A stretch of 64,000 bases of DNA from Auanema rhodensis (GCA_964057225.1 OZ059899.1:16492001-16556000), one strand, 5' to 3'. Positions 15,001 to 43,630 are shown, numbered from the stretch's first letter. Numbers and translations are program-made. Notes: a model not told the origin generated them from the sequence alone.

Positions 15001-16944
15001 ACACATCTGAATACCCAAGTTGTAACTATTTTTGTTTGATTATAGTTGATAATATTGGAGAAACATTGACAATCACCGGACACAACGTGTCTACAGCCTG
15101 AACTTTTTTGTGAACAAATCTTGTGGATGGGGTTGATATAAACCTTTTTTCCGGAAAACTGAGAAGTCACAGCCAAATCACAACCAAGTAATTCAGATTC
15201 TACACATCTGAATACCCAAGTTGTAACTATTTTTGTTTGATTATAGTTGATAATATTGGAGAAACATTGACAATCACCGGACACAACGTGTCTACAGCCT
15301 GAACTTTTTTGTGAACAAATCTTGTGGATGGGGTTGATATAAACCTTTTTTCCGGAAAACTGAGAAGTCACAGCCAAATCACAACCAAGTAATTCAGATT
15401 CTACACATCTGAATACCCAAGTTGTAACTATTTTTGTTTGATTATAGTTGATAATATTGGAGAAACATTGACAATCACCGGACACAACGTGTCTACAGCC
15501 TGAACTTTTTTGTGAACAAATCTTGTGGATGGGGTTGATATAAACCTTTTTTCCGGAAAACTGAGAAGTCACGGCCGAATCTTACTCGGAATATCAGATT
15601 CTACACATCTGAATACCCAAGTTGTAACTATTTTTGTTTGATTATAGTTGATAATATTGGAGAAACATTGACAATCACCGGACACAACGTGTCTACAGCC
15701 TGAACTTTTTTGTGAACAAATCTTGTGGATGGGGTTGATATAAACCTTTTTTCCGGAAAACTGAGAAGTCACAGCCAAATCACAACCAAGTAATTCAGAT
15801 TCTACACATCTGAATACCCAAGTTGTAACTATTTTTGTTTGATTATAGTTGATAATATTGGAGAAACATTGACAATCACCGGACACAACGTGCCTACAGC
15901 CTGAACTTTTTTGTGAACAAATCTTGTGGATGGGGTTGATATAAACCTTTTTTCCGGAAAACTGAGAAGTCACAGCCGAATCACACCAAGTAATTCAGAT
16001 TCTACACATCTGAATACCCAAGTTGTAACTATTTGTGTCCGGTTATAGTTGATAATATTGGAGAAACATTGACAATCACCGGACACAACGTGTCTACAGC
16101 CTGAACTTTTTTGTGAACAAATCTTGTGGATGGGGTTGATATAAACCTTTTTTCCGGAAAACTGAGAAGTCACAGCCAAATCACAACCAAGTAATTCAGA
16201 TTCTACACATCTGAATACCCAAGTTGTAACTATTTTTGTTTGATTATAGTTGATAATATTGGAGAAACATTGACAATCACCGGACACAACGTGTCTACAG
16301 CCTGAACTTTTTTGTGAACAAATCTTGTGGATGGGGTTGATATAAACCTTTTTTCCGGAAAACTGAGAAGTCACAGCCAAATCACAACCAAGTAATTCAG
16401 ATTCTACACATCTGAATACCCAAGTTGTAACTATTTTTGTTTGATTATAGTTGATAATATTGGAGAAACATTGACAATCACCGGACACAACGTGTCTACA
16501 GCCTGAACTTTTTTGTGAACAAATCTTGTGGATGGGGTTGATATAAACCTTTTTTCCGGAAAACTGAGAAGTCACAGCCAAATCACAACCAAGTAATTCA
16601 GATTCTACACATCTGAATACCCAAGTTGTAACTATTTTTGTTTGATTATAGTTGATAATATTGGAGAAACATTGACAATCACCGGACACAACGTGCCTAC
16701 AGCCTGAACTTTTTTGTGAACAAATCTTGTGGATGGGGTTGATATAAACCTTTTTTCCGGAAAACTGAGAAGTCACAGCCAAATCACACCAAGTAATTCA
16801 GATTCTACACATCTGAATACCCAAGTTGTAACTATTTTTGTTTGATTATAGTTGATAATATTGGAGAAACATTGACAATCACCGGACACAACGTGCCTAC
16901 AGCCTGAACTTTTTTGTGAACAAATCTTGTGGATGGGGTTGATA
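1..16944. repeat. Tandem array of ~85 copies of a 200/201-bp unit (runs off the left edge of the window)
   Basis: The same 200-bp unit (ctgaatacccaagttgtaac...attctacacat) recurs head-to-tail with a small set of recurrent variant sites; some units carry a +1 A insertion. The array ends abruptly after ggggttgata at 16944. Confidence 0.99.
9815..9899 (+). ncRNA. Candidate pre-miRNA hairpin, miR-35/36-family-like seed (representative copy; a version is present in every array unit)
   Basis: The 5' arm gttgtaactatttgtgtccggttatagttgat pairs with the 3' arm attgacaatcaccggacacaacgtgcctacagc, including a perfect 11-bp ttgtgtccggt/accggacacaa core. Wobbles are G:U on the + strand. Putative 3p product UCACCGGACACAACGUGCCUAC (9872-9893) has nt 2-7 CACCGG. 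No expression evidence. Confidence 0.5.
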
Positions 16945-17089
16945 CGTGCCCGGTGAAATTTCAAAAGGTTTTTTGAAATTTTACGAACTCACGTGGAAAA
17001 TGGTATATAAGTAATTGTTTTCATAAAAATAATCAGGCAGTGCATGTAAACTGTCTACACTCATCAACTCCGAAATGTGAATTCAAATT

Positions 17090-17263
17090 CATTGTGTCTT
17101 CGTAGAATCAAATTCGCTGGAGCTTTGTAGGATAACTACACTGTGACTTCGTGGTATCAACTTTCCTGGATTTTCATGGGTTAGCCTCACTGGATCTTCG
17201 TGGTATGAACTGTGATTTCGTAAAATCAGCTTCACTGGATCTTTGTGGAGTCAACTTTGCTGG
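17090..17263. repeat. Degenerate 24/25-bp minisatellite (~7 copies)
   Basis: Successive variants of cactggatcttcgtggtatcaactt (cattgtgtcttcgtagaatcaaatt, cactgtgacttcgtggtatcaactt, cactggatctttgtggagtcaactt, ...). Confidence 0.7.
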
Positions 17264-18397
17264 CTGTAACCGAGTTATCGGCTCTCGGAGTTTTTTTATC
17301 TTCACAGGCTCTTCGTGAGATCAATGTTTCTCGAGCCAGTCTCGAGTGTTGGATAGATTTTGATTGAAAATCGTTTGATAATTGACAATTTACAAGAAGA
17401 TAGTCATGTGCCAGAATTGCATAACTTCAATGCTATTGATATAGCTGTTGAAGGAGTTTTAAATAGCTGAGTCAATCCATGTAAGATCAGAAATCTAAAG
17501 AGATGGTATACAAGTAAATTCTTCATATTTACAATATTTTGCAGAATTAAGCAATACAAAGCTTCAAAATAAATTGTTTGGATATATATAGAATATATAT
17601 TCTGAGATAGTTTTCATTGTAAACACAAAATGAATGATATTGTATCATTAAAGATCAGCTTCGTATAAAGTCAATAATTTATTTTAAAGAAGTTAATTGA
17701 ATTTCCTTCAATAGCAAGAAAATCTGAACAGTTTTGGTGGCGTGGATCTAGATGACCTAGGTCAATCCCCATATCCTATGGTGTGAATTACCTGCAACAC
17801 TCATATGACATACGTAACTTCATAAGTAAGTATTATATTTGATTATGTTGTTGTCAATAGTTTTTAAAAACTTTTATTCATGTGGTCTAGTAAGACCCAT
17901 AAGAGTATTTTTGGATACCTTCTCATTCTGAGAAGGTAATTAGATAGGATAATTGATTCTTCGTTGTTTTAAATAGAATTTTGGAGTTTTTGACAGTTTT
18001 GATGAAATAATAGTTAAAAGAAGATTTATGAACTGATCCAATAATTTCCAAAAGCAATATGGAAAAACATTTTGAGATTGAATTCGAGAAATATCGGTCG
18101 GAAGAATAATTCAATTTGTTCTTTTTTTATTTTTAATCAAACAGTAATTCAAGATTTGTTGTTCTTAATTTCAATTTTGTGTTTTGATTACATCAATCAT
18201 ATATTCTTCTTAACCAACTTGAAACTTGAAACTACAGATAAAACTATTTTGGAAAAGAATTCAAATGAAAGTTGAATTATACTTTATCATGAAATATATA
18301 TATTGTATTCATGTTTATATATTTTTATCTAGATAATCATTCATTTTCTTATATTTTATAACAAAAAATATTTTTTATTTTTATACAAAAAAAAATG

Positions 18398-19850
18398 AAA
18401 AAATTGAAAAATTTTTAAGATTTTCTGATTCAAATATGTCAACAAGTTTTCGTTCAAATATGTATTTATATTATTGTGAAGGTTAGTGATATTCATAAAT
18501 TGAAATTTTAAAGAAAAAAACTTCATTCAGGTACAATAATCTGTATAACTAATTCTATTTTGCTATTTTGTATATTAGCTAATACTAAAAATCGGTATAT
18601 AATCTTAATTATATGATATAGATAGTGATATTGTGTTCCAGAAATCGCCGAGAGTTCCTTTTGATTGCTGCTCAGGCTATAGCTGACGACTTATATGCTA
18701 TATCGTTCATTCTCGTAGCTGAATTACGACTTCGGTTAGCTGACGAAGGACGAGGTTCGAACTAGCTTAACGGGCTTCTTACCCTCAGGCTGTCCGACGT
18801 GTTCCTCAAATCCTTTTTCAGAAAATGGAAACTCCACTGTATGGGTCTGTGCTCTGGAACCAGCGTTGCCTATTCATGATCTATCGACTCCATTGCTTGG
18901 CTTATTGCCATTAGCAACATCTCTGAATTTCCTTGTGTGTACTGTAGCACCATTCTTCTACTTGAGAGCTGGTAAAGGCTATACAACTGTACTTATTGGA
19001 TGTTCGTTAACTATATGTTATAAATTAAGTAATTATCTTTAATTTAAGCTCCATATCTTATATCCTTTATACTGTTATTCGTTAATTATGCGATGATTTG
19101 GGAAGATGAAACACTGACTTCGTCTCTATGTGTTGCAACTAAAGGTGCTGCACACCCTGTTGTTTATGGAATTATGAGGCTTTTACGTGTCATGTCAACC
19201 TTTGTCAGTGCTATCATCTATGGATTTATCCTGGCTTATCTTCGAAAGGTTAGTTATGCTAACTATGTCTTGATACCAATTCCCAAGTAAAAAGTCTGGT
19301 GATCTGAGGTGAATCAAGTGTCGGATCTTGTGACTTGACGTCAGAAGTTCCAAGTTTCTTGCTTCCCTCTTTCCCATCAAGCATGTTGTGTTCCAATTAA
19401 TTCCAAACTTATACTCAAAATCAAAAACACAAAGTTTCAACTTGGCGGTAAAAGTTTGTTATCAAAGTTATTTTCAGAAACGTCCACAACCTTCAGAAGT
19501 ACAGCGAATGAATCATCGAAACACTACTATAACTCTAGGTATAAGCATATTCAAAAACCAATTTTGGCGCCAAAATGAATAAGAAAATGCTTTTTCAGGT
19601 TTAGTAACAATCAATTCAATGTTTTTATTATTTATACCTGATGTTATAATGTTTATTAATCCATTTAATATTCTTGCTAACTATTCTACTTTACTATATT
19701 CAATGACACTTAGTAAGGTTAATTATATTTTTATTTCTTAACTATATGTATATATAACTATACTATATAATAATCTTTTATTTTATAGACTATGATCAAT
19801 TTCTTTATTTATATGTGGAGATATCGTGAGCTTCGTCTCATTGTTATAGC
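18398..19850 (+). repeat. Left arm of a 1453-bp inverted repeat
   Basis: Reverse complement of 21345-22797; coordinates sum to 41195 throughout, as do the mirrored ORFs 19093/22102 and 19388/21807. One mismatch noticed (19827/21368). Confidence 0.97.
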
Positions 19851-38367: not shown

Positions 38368-39538
38368 TCAGTTGAAGAGGATAGGAATTTCATCTTCGTC
38401 GTGTAGCATGCTCTTCGCTTGATAATCGTCTACATCTTCATTCTAAAATATGGGTCATTTAGAAAAAAAGAATTTTATTGAAAGGATTTTACTTCTTTTC
38501 CGCGTTCAAGCAACTCTTGTTCCTTCTGCTTCTTCTTATTAGCTTGAATCTTCTTCATTCTGAAAATATAAAATTGAAGTTTCAATTTCAAAAACAGAAA
38601 AAATCTCATAAAAATTAAATTTAAAACGACATACCTGAAGAACTCTTCTCTTTCCATTTCGTCCAACTCGGTGACGATATAAGTCAGTGTGTTTTCGATA
38701 CGTGGAATAATAACTAAACATGGACAATTTGAATAAAGAACAAAATTTCAAGAAAATCTTACCGTGCTCAATAGCATTTACACGTCTGTTAGTAACTTTG
38801 ATAGCTTCATCAAGAGTGATAAAGCAAGTCTGAAGAGTAGCCAGTTCTACCAAAAGCTCAATAGCCTACAAAGAAAACAGAACAAATTACAAATGAAAAA
38901 AAGTAAAACTTTGTTGTAATTTTTCTTCAGACGAGCAATATTAGATCCTCCTCTACCTAATCCAGTTAAATCATAGGCATCAGGTCCATCCTGATATGAG
39001 TCGAATACGGGGAGGAAAACTCCTACAAATTTGAGCATGAATCAAACGCATTCTTTTGAAAAACAAAAGCTATACTAATAAAAACGTACCGACAACATTT
39101 TCCTTCTTCATTCTTACACGGTACTGAGCTTGGCTTACGTTTTGAATGACTGTATGAGAGAAATCTCCAGCGGTGAACTTGGCTTCGGCTAAAGAGAAAG
39201 CAGCATCTTTCAATACTTCGCCCATGACTACTTTATTCTAGAACGTCAAAATTAGTATAAACATAAAAGTTTGGAATTTTACCTCGACAATTTTGCGGAG
39301 AATATCACGGAAACGCATGTTCAAAGCGTCAGCTTTCTTCTTAAGAAGAGAGTGACCTTTCTGAGCTCCCTTCAGACGAGCCTTCATGACTGTTTGAGCC
39401 CTTCAAAATTAATTTTCTATATAATAAACTGAGTTTACATTTTTGTTCCAATTTAAATAGATGTAGCATGAAATAAATAAATCAAACTTACATACGACTC
39501 GGGAAAACAGCAATACGATCTTTACCTCCTCCAGACAT
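38368..39538 (-). CDS. vha-14: V-type ATPase V1 subunit D
   Basis: [16 protein letters not shown]..., [54 protein letters not shown]. Confidence 0.96.
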
Positions 39539-40867: not shown

Positions 40868-41703
40868 ATGGCTATATTTTTTTGTTTTCTACTGAGTTTA
40901 CTATTTCTGAATACTGAAGCTGAGTAGGTTCAATTTTTTCAATTGGCACCTAATTTTGAAAATTATTTTAGAAATGTTTACTGTACTTATTACCGAGAGA
41001 CGGATGAGCTTACTTGTGGGTACGTAAAGTTTTAGATTATAAAATATTAATTTGAATAATCGTTCGGATTTCTTTGACGTTAACAATTGCAGTACTGTAA
41101 CTTGTCCAACACAAAAGCCGCCAATTGAAGGTCTAGAACAAGAAGGCCTGGATGCAAAACTACCTAGAGGATGGTAAGATCAAAGAAACATGTAAAAGGA
41201 TGATAAAGCTATTGACTCTCTAGGTATCGCATTGGGGTTATGCAGATTCGTAGAGATACAGCTTGGTTCAACTTGTATCGTCGACGAGCTGTAGGTAATG
41301 GGTACTGGGATTTCTATACAAATATTCCTGAACGAAATTGTGTCGGGTAAGTAATATATTTATAATTCTCATTATTTATCTATTTATTTTACAGCGGATT
41401 TGGTCTACATGCTGGAGATAATATTCTCGGATCAATAACAGTGAAAGACAAAAAGTGTTTTGATCGGCTTGTCTATCAGGCTAGTTTATTTTTTGATAGC
41501 ATGAGGATCCTTATAATTTTATTAATCAACATAGTCATTCTTCTTATCAATTTGAACTAAACTAATTTTAGATTGAACGCAAATCAACGTCAGAGAAATT
41601 TGATGTCCATCAATGCCGTAAGTGCATATTCCACAGCTGCTGGCTTGGATCACGCCTTCTCCCTGCCCAAAGAGAATACTTGACTAACCTTAGAAGCTAC
41701 TAA
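40868..41703 (+). CDS. Secreted ~170 aa protein with Tlde1/DUF2778 (L,D-transpeptidase-fold)-like motifs
   Basis: Six exons: MAIFFCFLLSLLFLNTEAE/NVYCTYYRETDELTCG/TVTCPTQ...AKLPRGW/YRIGVMQIRRDTAWFNLYRRRAVGNGYWDFYTNIPERNCVG/GFGLHAGDNILGSITVKDKKCFDRLVYQ/IERK...RSY*. The last intron needs a GC donor. Confidence 0.7.
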
Positions 41704-42164
41704 TCACTTTCCGATAATAAACTGTTTTTTATGATCGTAAAAACCCACAAGCGACATCGCATCAGTTCTCGTTCGATAGATTGTACTTGTTTTATAATGC
41801 ATAGCATTCGTTATCCTCGTGGCATTCGTCTACCAGATCTTGTTTAGTTCCCACTAATTCATATAAATCATTGCAACCATGTAATAACATTTTTAAAATT
41901 TCGTTTTCTTAAATTTATACAGACTGAAATATTATGATATAAAATGAAATATCTAATTGTGTAGCTTATGTCTTTGAAACATTTGTACTGTGTTTACAAG
42001 TGTCATTATGGACATGTCGTAGCGCCACGTTTCTTTGAAGTATTTACTTTAAGCATGTTTTATTAAAGTTTAATTAATTTTTATGATGGCATTCTTTTTC
42101 CTAGTGATGTTTTAGATATGATTTCAAATGGTTTTTTTCTATTTATTTTATTTTTAAGAGAACT

Positions 42165-43630
42165 ATGAAGTATATTCTTTTATTTGGGTTTTTGTTTCTC
42201 TCAGCTTGGGCAGCCGATTCAGAGGAGGTTCGTATTTCATCGTAATTTTCTTCTATTCTCTTAATTTTTTAAAAATTGATGTACTGACGCGAAGGTGTTT
42301 AAGGGAGTAAAAAAAGATTTTGTTGATCTTGATAATGCGGGCAAACAAGCTGATGTTCCTCCTTTAGACCAAGAAGATGTCGAAGGTAATTCGGGTGTTA
42401 CTGCTGCAAAGGTTTAATTTGCTAGAAAAATGTTTAAAATTTTGGTAATATATTCAGAAAGATGTGGACTTAGACTTTGCTCACGGTTTCTTAGCTAGTT
42501 TTTCTGTTATAATCGTTTCCGAACTCGGAGATAAAACTTGGTTTATCGCTGTTATTATGTCTATGCGTCATTCAAGACTAACAGTTTTTTCCGGAGCAAT
42601 TGCCGCTTTAGCTTTGATGACTGTACTCTCAGGTTTGTAAATTTGTGAAAGCTTATCAGCTGTAGTATTATTGTATGTTTAGCATGTCTTGGTTGGGTAA
42701 CACAACTTATTCCAAGAGCCATTACTTACTATATATCTACTGCTTTGTTTGCACTATTTGGATTGAAAATGCTTCACGAAGGTTATCATATGAGCCCCAA
42801 TGAAGGACAGGTGTGTCTTTTATCTCTATTTATCTTTTTTTTTCTTATATAGGAAGGTTATGAGGAAGCGCAAGCTGAGGTAGCTAAGAGAGAACTAGAT
42901 CTTGACGCTGGAAAATTTGTTGATATGGAAGCAGGTGGAAGTGGTCGTAATGAGTAAGCAGATAAATTTTCAATTATTGTTTATTTCAAAATTGCGTTGA
43001 ACAATGTTATTGTTGGAAATCTTTTTAGGAAAGAAAAGCTATTTGAAAAAATATATCGAAGGTATATATGTCCAAAGTGTATTACAATAATTTATTGAAA
43101 TCTTTGTTAAAATCCCTCCCTATGTTTTTTCAAATATTTCAATCCTCTTTTTACCTTGCGTTGGTATATGTAGCCTGAATTTGCTTTATTCATATTTTCA
43201 GGAGCTCTGTTTGGGTGATTTTCTCGTTCGCTTCTCGCATTTTCATTGAAGCTTTCACTTTAACTTTTGTAGCTGAATGGGGTGATCGATCTCAATTAAC
43301 AACCATAATCTTGGCTGCTAGAGAAAATATTGGTAAGCTTATTATTAAGCTTGATTTGTTTTGCTGATTTTTCTCTTTAAACTCTTCGTATTTTCAGCTG
43401 GAGTTATTAGTGGAGGTGTAATTGGACATGCTATATGTACTGGTATTGCCGTTGTTGGAGGAAAGCTTGTTGCTCAAAGAATCTCTGTTCGCACAGGTCA
43501 TATTCTTTCAATAACAATGTTTTAATGATTATTCTTTTTAGTTACACTCATTGGAGGAGTTGTCTTCTTAATTTTTGCTCTTTCTTCTCTATTCATCAGT
43601 AGTTTTGACGACAAACCAGTAGATGTCTAA
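42165..43630 (+). CDS. TMEM165: GDT1/TMEM165 (UPF0016) Golgi Ca2+/Mn2+ transporter
   Basis: Signal peptide, then both family motifs: SELGDKTWF and AEWGDRSQL; GHAICTGIAVVGG. Confidence 0.93.

Follow-up and report, generated by a model that had tools for sequence, protein, structure and literature searches.

What kind of protein is encoded between positions 40868 and 41703 of the Auanema rhodensis stretch OZ059899.1:16492001-16556000, and how could a nematode have come to carry a gene that resembles a bacterial cell wall toxin? The window is this whole stretch of 64,000 nucleotides, and all positions are counted from its first letter. An original prediction for this DNA described a secreted protein resembling Tlde1 (DUF2778, Pfam family PF10908), a toxin of the bacterial type VI secretion system (T6SS), with an altered catalytic motif. 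Our analysis suggests that the locus is a single-copy nematode gene for a secreted protein of the L,D-transpeptidase fold, which derives from a bacterial Tlde1 domain and acts as a non-catalytic binder, and we give this reading as a whole a probability of roughly 0.7. Relative to the literature searched, in which no paper was found on eukaryotic Tlde1-domain proteins or on the orthologues Y22D7AL.6 of Caenorhabditis elegans and Bm6328 of Brugia, the homology and the origin are new. A polymorphic-toxin survey of 2012 mentions L,D-peptidase toxin domains in bacteria only, and the sole prior hint is the UniProt label of the C. elegans protein, 'DUF5675 domain-containing protein', which already indicated the right fold class.

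The window gene was tested exon by exon, and orthologous database proteins served as full-length proxies. A phmmer search with exon 4 against 1.84 billion representative proteins gave 17 matches, the best being an 88%-identical stretch of a 178-amino-acid Rhabditophanes protein; a search seeded with this protein returned 38 proteins, and cluster look-ups added further members. The orthologues come from over 30 species of nematode clades III-V, free-living and parasitic; they are 55-77% identical to the reference member, and the 27 aligned nematode sequences have 45 invariant columns. Closest to the window exons are the proteins of Caenorhabditis angaria, with 85% identity, and C. auriculariae, with 83%. 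The profile built from these 27 orthologues (A1) matches the window exons in four colinear segments (profile positions 10-40, 34-70, 63-133 and 132-176; E 4e-3, 4e-5, 1e-32 and 5e-21) and has no other match in the 181-Mb genome, which indicates a single copy. Full-length colinearity, the Cys framework with all eight conserved Cys retained, shared introns and the single copy place the gene in the group of Y22D7AL.6 and Bm6328, of which it is, judging from these features, an orthologue.

The connection to Tlde1 runs through a second animal family. Besides the nematode proteins, the exon 4 search found distant proteins of 150-190 amino acids in ENA, JGI and Logan assemblies, with the motif G-F-G-L-H-x-G-x-x-S-E-G-C-I-T-V, and these were expanded to 29. 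This Cys-retaining animal family (A2) was compared with A1 and with a set of ten bacterial DUF2778 proteins (A4). A1 and A2 aligned over 153 columns by hhalign (probability 100%; expectation value, E, 1.3e-48) and have a common architecture consisting of a signal peptide, a C-T-Y-Y-R...C-G start, KLPxGxYxIG, WFNLY, GYWD[YF]xT, the catalytic motif, CFxRL and an E-C-R-x-C...C tail. Among the A2 proteins, 23/26 match PF10908 (best E 5.9e-9), three also match YkuD and some carry precomputed PF10908 labels; in a search of Protein Data Bank (PDB) sequences the A2 profile found Tlde1a only (7UO8 and 7UMA, E 0.14), with the motifs in register. Profile-profile comparison established homology to bona fide bacterial DUF2778 proteins, A2 aligning with A4 at a probability of 98.6% (E 5.7e-16) with KLPxGxY set against GPIPxGxY, while the direct comparison of A1 with A4 gave E 7.7e-5 at a probability of 62% and aligned WFxLyR and G-x-x-LH-x-G...G-[S/C]-[IV]-T. 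The A2 profile also finds exon 4 (E 5.5e-11) and exon 5 (profile positions 98-125, E 9.6e-4) of the window gene in colinear order.

On the bacterial side, tblastn of one A2 member against plasmids gave 15 listed records, 11 of them annotated 'DUF2778 domain-containing protein', and two of the nine comparators fetched adjoin Hcp/TssD. One unannotated match was a cyanobacterial Rhs-type C-terminal toxin with the motif L-H-P-G-T-I-S-E-G-C-I-T-L. On a megaplasmid of the cyanobacterium Kovacikia minuta, an unannotated Rhs/YD-repeat protein (L010:823-1854) ends in a Tlde1-like domain with the motif LHPGTISEGCITL, which very nearly matches the one in the animal family, and next after this Rhs toxin follows a 317-amino-acid repeat protein (L010:1851-2804) that could be its immunity partner.

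The predicted fold agrees with this relationship. AlphaFold2 was run on the C. angaria orthologue P0032, 85% identical to the window exons, with an alignment of 48 sequences, and returned a model with a predicted local distance difference test score (pLDDT) of 89.5 and a predicted template modelling score of 0.81. Nearly all Foldseek matches of this model in the PDB are of the L,D-transpeptidase fold (LdtMt1/2/3/5, YkuD, Pgp2, Bd1075, DpaA, Tlde1a), mostly at probabilities of 0.85-1.0, with one unrelated row, TFIIA, at 0.11; the highest reciprocal TM-score was obtained for Tlde1a (0.43/0.43). By VIA-align, all 50 matches listed are of the L,D-transpeptidase type, with Z 9.2-9.8 for Pgp2, Bd1075, Csd6 and YkuD. 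The structural matches span model residues 18-174, and the Cys-rich C-terminus therefore belongs to the barrel, so that the whole mature chain is predicted to adopt the L,D-transpeptidase (YkuD/MEROPS C82) beta-barrel. For the Cys-retaining A2 protein P0016, a model with a pLDDT of 88.1 shows the same secondary-structure order and match list as P0032, and an ESM-Atlas feature search with the nematode protein led to Tlde1_dom and YkuD clusters at 0.90-0.92. By the profile chain from A1 through A2 to A4, the modelled fold and the language-model neighbours, the window protein is a homologue of Tlde1/DUF2778, and the resemblance first noted from motifs is thus true homology. In sequence, the bacterial Tlde1/DUF2778 toxin domain is the family closest to it.

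Has the nematode protein remained an enzyme? In Tlde1a of Salmonella Typhimurium the motif comprises H121, S128, H129 and C131, S128 hydrogen-bonds to the catalytic His, and the cleft is lined by W90, W93, R99, R115 and Y119 (PMC9638812). Residue equivalents were read from the register of the A2-Tlde1a, A1-A4 and A2-A4 alignments. The H121 equivalent is invariant in nematodes and that of W90, in WFNLY, nearly so; R115 is represented by V/A/I and S128 by I/L, and the motif loop is two residues shorter than that of Tlde1a. At the position of C131 stands Ser in the window gene and most species, Thr in Enterobius, Dictyocaulus and Heligmosomoides, Ala in Necator and Val in Ancylostoma, and the remaining sequence of the orthologues with Thr, Ala or Val is still highly conserved. 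The catalytic H...S-x-G-C with a nucleophilic Cys is thus missing, and the original prediction had correctly read a retained His and a change from S-x-G-C to I-L-G-S. Since the column tolerates Ala and Val, an essential nucleophile is excluded at this position, and because the Cys position is S/T/A/V and the equivalents of Ser128 and Arg115 are lost, the nematode protein is most likely a pseudo-enzyme whose former cleft would bind something. Of the two possibilities considered at first, a pseudo-enzyme or a Ser-nucleophile variant, the former is therefore better supported and the latter less so.

An active L,D-carboxypeptidase or transpeptidase with a His-Ser pair, which would digest or edit the peptidoglycan stems of food or gut bacteria, would fit the invariant His, the Ser in the window gene and most nematode orthologues, the very strong conservation around the cleft, and the G-S likewise found in the non-nematode sister P0105. 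We nevertheless consider such an enzyme unlikely, given the Ala, Val and Thr substitutions in otherwise conserved proteins, the replacement of the Ser that bonds the catalytic His in Tlde1a (PMC9638812), the lost Arg and the shortened loop. The family also occurs in tissue-dwelling filariae and in plant parasites, which do not feed on bacteria. The presence of members in filarial, hookworm, plant-parasitic and insect-parasitic nematodes likewise speaks against the earlier suggestion of a link to bacterivory or digestion.

The predicted gene has six exons on the + strand, with ATG at 40868 and TAA ending at 41703, and encodes a product of about 175 amino acids, of which about 155 form the mature protein. 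Its five introns measure 48, 73, 50, 48 and 92 nucleotides, sizes that are typical of nematodes; introns 1-4 are GT-AG and intron 5 is GC-AG. The features of the locus and its surroundings are as follows.

40868..40923, + strand: exon 1, with the start codon, a signal-peptide-like N-terminus (hydrophobic core, small residues at -3/-1) and a split codon at its end
40972..41019, + strand: exon 2, N-terminal Cys hairpin motif NVYCTYYRETDELTCG; A1 profile positions 10-40, E 4e-3
41093..41173, + strand: exon 3, TVTC...KLPRG(W), where the Tlde1-like domain begins (comparable to bacterial GPxPxGxYxI); A1 profile positions 34-70, E 4e-5
41224..41346, + strand: exon 4, YRIG...WFNLY...GYWDFYTNIPERNCV, beta-core and capping insert; A2 profile, E 5.5e-11
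41395..41479, + strand: exon 5, GFGLHAGDNILGSITV, the degenerate catalytic motif in which the His is retained and Ser replaces the Cys of Tlde1, and the CFDRL helix
41480..41571, + strand: intron 5, GC-AG; if retained, a stop at 41558-41560 and loss of the conserved C-terminus
41572..41703, + strand: exon 6, Cys-rich C-terminal strands IERKST...QCRKCIFHSCWLG...TNLRSY and the stop codon; A1 profile positions 132-176, E 4.8e-21
41716..41721, + strand: AATAAA polyadenylation signal, 13 nucleotides past the stop
38500-39230, - strand: upstream neighbour, V-ATPase subunit D (PF01813), intron-split
42460-43530, + strand: downstream neighbour, GDT1/TMEM165-type cation/proton antiporter (PF01169), intron-split

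The exon translations hold CTYYRETDELTCG, LPRG/W/YRIG, WFNLY, GFGLHAGDNILGSITV and CFDRL, so the signal-like N-terminus, the five introns and the motifs listed in the original prediction were all recovered in the model. All exon junctions match continuous orthologue sequence: TCG|TVTC, LPRG-W-YRIG, NCV-G-GFGLH and, across the GC-AG intron, VYQ|IERKST. In all orthologues a hydrophobic segment is followed by E-N-V-Y-C, and the segment in exon 1 stops just ahead of the mature start (E)NVYCTYYR; from this N-terminus we infer that the product is secreted. The locus lies on contig 7 of the 181-Mb assembly of 112 contigs. Contamination or a bacterial gene is ruled out by the introns together with the intron-split eukaryotic housekeeping neighbours, which also identify the locus as chromosomal nematode DNA. 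As modelled from the sequence, the locus carries a spliced nematode gene that is functional and present in one copy.

A rival reading concerns the last intron, in that a GC donor is uncommon and the read-through frame is open to 41560; the intron would then remain unspliced and the protein would end in a read-through tail, the model being an artefact or the gene decaying. We regard this as very improbable. Retention of the GC-AG intron would remove a stretch of 43 residues with a family match at E 5e-21, and this stretch is encoded in frame by exon 6 with a junction exactly as in the orthologues; in addition, the eight conserved Cys are all present and AATAAA follows the modelled stop. The proteins of C. 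angaria and Brugia were mapped onto their own genomic loci to compare intron positions, and in both the VYQIE(R/K)K region lies within one exon; this uninterrupted stretch supports the GC-AG intron of the A. rhodensis gene.

The same comparison dates the gene. Introns 1, 2 and 4 are common to the window gene, C. angaria and Brugia, and introns 3 (41174-41223) and 5 (41480-41571) have no counterpart in the orthologues of C. angaria and Brugia, so that introns 3 and 5 would represent either gains in this lineage or parallel losses in C. angaria and Brugia. Because three introns are shared, the acquisition is ancient, and a recent transfer into this species is ruled out by the orthologues and shared introns across Rhabditida.

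The orthologues are distributed over three clades. Clade III contributes Brugia, Onchocerca, Loa, Wuchereria, Dirofilaria, Dracunculus, Gnathostoma, Enterobius and Toxocara; clade IV Panagrolaimus, Steinernema, Bursaphelenchus, Aphelenchoides, Ditylenchus, Meloidogyne and Halicephalobus; and clade V Caenorhabditis including C. elegans, Pristionchus, Necator, Ancylostoma, Dictyocaulus, Heligmosomoides, Angiostrongylus and Heterorhabditis. Proteins of Trichinella or Trichuris were not among the matches of the exon 4 and Rhabditophanes-seeded searches, which is weak evidence for an absence of the family from Enoplea. Several orthologues are complete reading frames on contigs of 0.7-1.9 kb that, by their size, may be transcript assemblies, in which case these orthologues would be expressed and spliced. 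Two very long exon 4 matches (P0009 and P0013) were discarded as spurious, being bacterial Cna_B adhesins aligned over 15-24 residues only, and the source names 'Fibrinogen C-terminal' and 'Gnk2-homologous' were rejected as they found no support in any Pfam scan. In P0008 (262 amino acids), the C-terminal two thirds of a nematode orthologue are joined to a Paired-box (PAX) domain, which is almost certainly a prediction fusion of neighbouring genes.

How the nematode genes relate to the other animal and bacterial sequences was addressed by a maximum likelihood tree (IQ-TREE, LG+C20 with posterior mean site frequencies) that comprised 24 sequences from the nematode family, 25 from the invertebrate one and 10 from bacteria; P0046, P0047 and P0050 were excluded for their faulty models and P0012 for an aberrant C-terminus. 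All nematode sequences fall into a single long-stemmed clade (100/100), which lies within the invertebrate sequences and has broadly taxonomic groupings inside (filariae, strongylids and Caenorhabditis each starred); its sister is P0105, with weak support (93/72), which also has G-S and not G-C. Animals are split from bacteria at 87/96. The phylogeny with bacterial homologues called for by the original prediction therefore yields a single nematode clade within the animals, and the transfer into this particular worm that it had envisaged does not hold for a gene that is an old orthologue, shares three introns with C. angaria and Brugia and belongs to a clade nested in a wider animal family. The tree and the shared introns indicate vertical inheritance since at least the rhabditid ancestor, and the sequences point to a wider, patchy animal family beyond nematodes. 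In bacteria the domain is common in T6SS, Rhs and plasmid settings, while its occurrence in animals is patchy, and it is therefore likely bacterial in origin.

The A2 genes are intronless and multi-copy, with several paralogues per assembly, and lie on large contigs with split dynein heavy-chain exons and VWD/C8/EGF genes; these contigs are animal genomes inside marine holobiont metagenome assemblies, one of them derived from an ENA metagenome sample with a Tara label (probably Tara Pacific). A signal peptide and an intact H...S-E-G-C were seen at L002:4001-4513, L003:10001-10489, L004:10001-10525, L007:1061-1573 and L021:10001-10510, which makes the A2 proteins candidate animal antibacterial enzymes. 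A2 genes were not seen in named proteomes. Beside the A2 gene on L003 lie tandem intronless enoyl-CoA hydratase/isomerase genes (16293-19371, - strand), two of 278 amino acids. A2 proteins such as P0016 and P0104 resemble the nematode proteins over the full length, in the signal peptide, the Cys framework, the CTYYR...CG start, the ECRxC...C tail and the predicted structure, but they have kept H...S-E-G-C and the Arg, are multi-copy and intronless, and share 32-41% identity with the closest nematode orthologue. A search of GTDB genomes and IMG/VR with the animal profile gave no confirmed relative. An ESM Atlas cluster of 82 'Tlde1 domain-containing proteins' (164 amino acids, 100% PF10908) is assigned to Nucleocytoviricota, and giant viruses are a possible route of the Tlde1 domain into eukaryotes.

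Compared with Tlde1a and bacterial PF10908 domains, the nematode protein has the same fold, a similar size (about 160-175 amino acids) and, in colinear order, GPxPxGxYxI, WFxLy, R-G-x-F-x-L-H, [S]-x-G-[C]-I-T-[LV] and the F..L helix; the equivalents of His121 and Trp90 are kept, and the best reciprocal TM-scores are 0.43-0.46. In contrast, the nematode gene is eukaryotic, with introns and a signal peptide, and the eight conserved Cys include N- and C-terminal Cys motifs missing from the bacterial proteins. It further deviates by Cys131 to Ser (or T/A/V), Ser128 to I/L and Arg115 to V/A/I, by the shorter loop and by the lack of a direct PF10908 match. The T6SS/Rhs and immunity-gene context of bacterial Tlde1 is also missing, the nematode gene being flanked by V-ATPase D and GDT1 and the bacterial ones by Hcp/TssD or placed at an Rhs C-terminus. 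With the canonical L,D-transpeptidases and -carboxypeptidases (YkuD, LdtMt1/2, Pgp2, Csd6, Bd1075) the protein shares the catalytic-domain fold (VIA Z 8-9.8, root-mean-square deviation 1.8-3.4 A over 90-111 residues), whereas identity is 7-17% and those enzymes are bacterial, usually with extra domains, and carry H-x(14-17)-[ST]-H-G-C with an essential Cys.

Domesticated amidase effectors (Dae) derive from T6SS Tae toxins and have retained catalytic residues and antibacterial activity. They offer an analogy in that an interbacterial wall-toxin domain was taken up by animals and furnished with a signal peptide, but the nematode family has another fold and is without the nucleophile. DUF5675 (PF18925) has been described as a domain of phages and bacteria that is C82-like (L,D-transpeptidase-like; bioRxiv 10.64898/2026.04.11.717860) and so belongs to the same broad fold class. 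The UniProt label was however not reproduced, as neither C. elegans P0059 nor other members match PF18925 at E<=10, and A2 matches PF10908, not PF18925. A six-frame genome scan with PF18925 was blank, a result of little weight given that the control was also silent.

Several observations weigh against our account. PF10908, YkuD and DUF5675 gave no match at E<=10 for the window exons or for 12 full-length nematode orthologues, and an exon-wise six-frame genome scan with PF10908 was blank, although this counts for little because its control was silent too. Against PDB sequences the nematode profile gave chance matches only, Tlde1a not being among them. The Foldseek E-values of the P0032 model are modest (2e-3 to 7e-2), VIA Z values of 8-10 are only slightly above the stated background, and the fold of the window protein is represented by the model of an 85%-identical orthologue. 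With ten plasmid sequences as the only bacterial outgroup, the tree does not fix the donor, number, timing or direction of transfers. Finally, Ser in most species, including this one, leaves room for a His-Ser enzyme with a secondary loss in strongylids, and the extreme conservation suits an enzyme as well as a binder.

In line with the first of these points, the nematode members fall outside strict PF10908 membership, for which the threshold is the gathering score of 30.1 bits, and the literal assignment to DUF2778 was thus not borne out; an exon-wise PDB sequence search gave only chance matches to GFRP, and the bacterial DUF2778 profile had no exon-wise match in the genome. Of the profile and fold checks suggested at the outset, the direct PF10908 match was therefore absent, while the profile-profile comparison with bacterial DUF2778 and the Foldseek comparison of the orthologue model with the Tlde1a and YkuD folds were positive.

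We hypothesize that the Tlde1/DUF2778 domain, found in bacterial T6SS and Rhs effectors, entered animals from bacteria long ago and that some marine invertebrates retained multi-copy, intronless versions with an intact H...S-E-G-C. In the lineage of rhabditid nematodes, a single copy would have gained introns; the nucleophilic Cys (now S/T/A/V), the Ser of the motif and the Arg of the cleft would have been lost, with the His and the aromatic cleft kept under very strong constraint. The resulting secreted, disulfide-rich protein, for which four disulfides are predicted, would no longer cleave or cross-link peptide stems and would instead act as an extracellular binder whose former substrate cleft holds a conserved ligand; candidates are a peptide stem, a ligand resembling a D-amino acid, or an endogenous partner in the matrix or cuticle.

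A more specific role would be that of an innate-immune sensor or opsonin for bacterial peptidoglycan that fills the gap left by PGRP/NOD receptors, which are reported to be absent from nematodes. Secretion, the ancestry in a muropeptide-binding fold and the retained cleft aromatics and His would suit this role, but a single copy with 55-77% identity across rhabditids is atypical, as pathogen-facing receptors usually diversify, and we judge a dedicated sensor to be rather improbable. Similarly doubtful, in our estimation, is the far-reaching idea that rhabditids, including human filariae and hookworms, rely on a domesticated, catalytically dead domain of a T6SS toxin, which would serve as a conserved receptor outside the cell and recognise peptidoglycan stems or other D-amino-acid-bearing ligands. 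If true, this receptor would be the long-missing nematode sensor of the bacterial cell wall, with relevance to microbiota, Wolbachia and food sensing, and the marine invertebrate relatives, intronless and with an intact catalytic site, would be genuine antibacterial effectors in animal immunity.

The reading of a secreted, non-catalytic binder derived from Tlde1 provides a fold, an origin and a testable hypothesis for a secreted protein that is uncharacterised but very strongly conserved, and that occurs in C. elegans (Y22D7AL.6) and in major parasites such as Brugia, Onchocerca, Loa, Necator, Ancylostoma, Meloidogyne and Bursaphelenchus. It would add a Tlde1/L,D-transpeptidase-like domain to the short list of interbacterial toxin domains acquired by animals, and the intact branch in marine invertebrates and the dead, slowly evolving branch in nematodes may serve as a natural pair for studying the path from toxin to pseudo-enzyme. 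Being secreted, conserved and seemingly confined to nematodes and a few invertebrates, the protein is furthermore a plausible diagnostic or intervention target.

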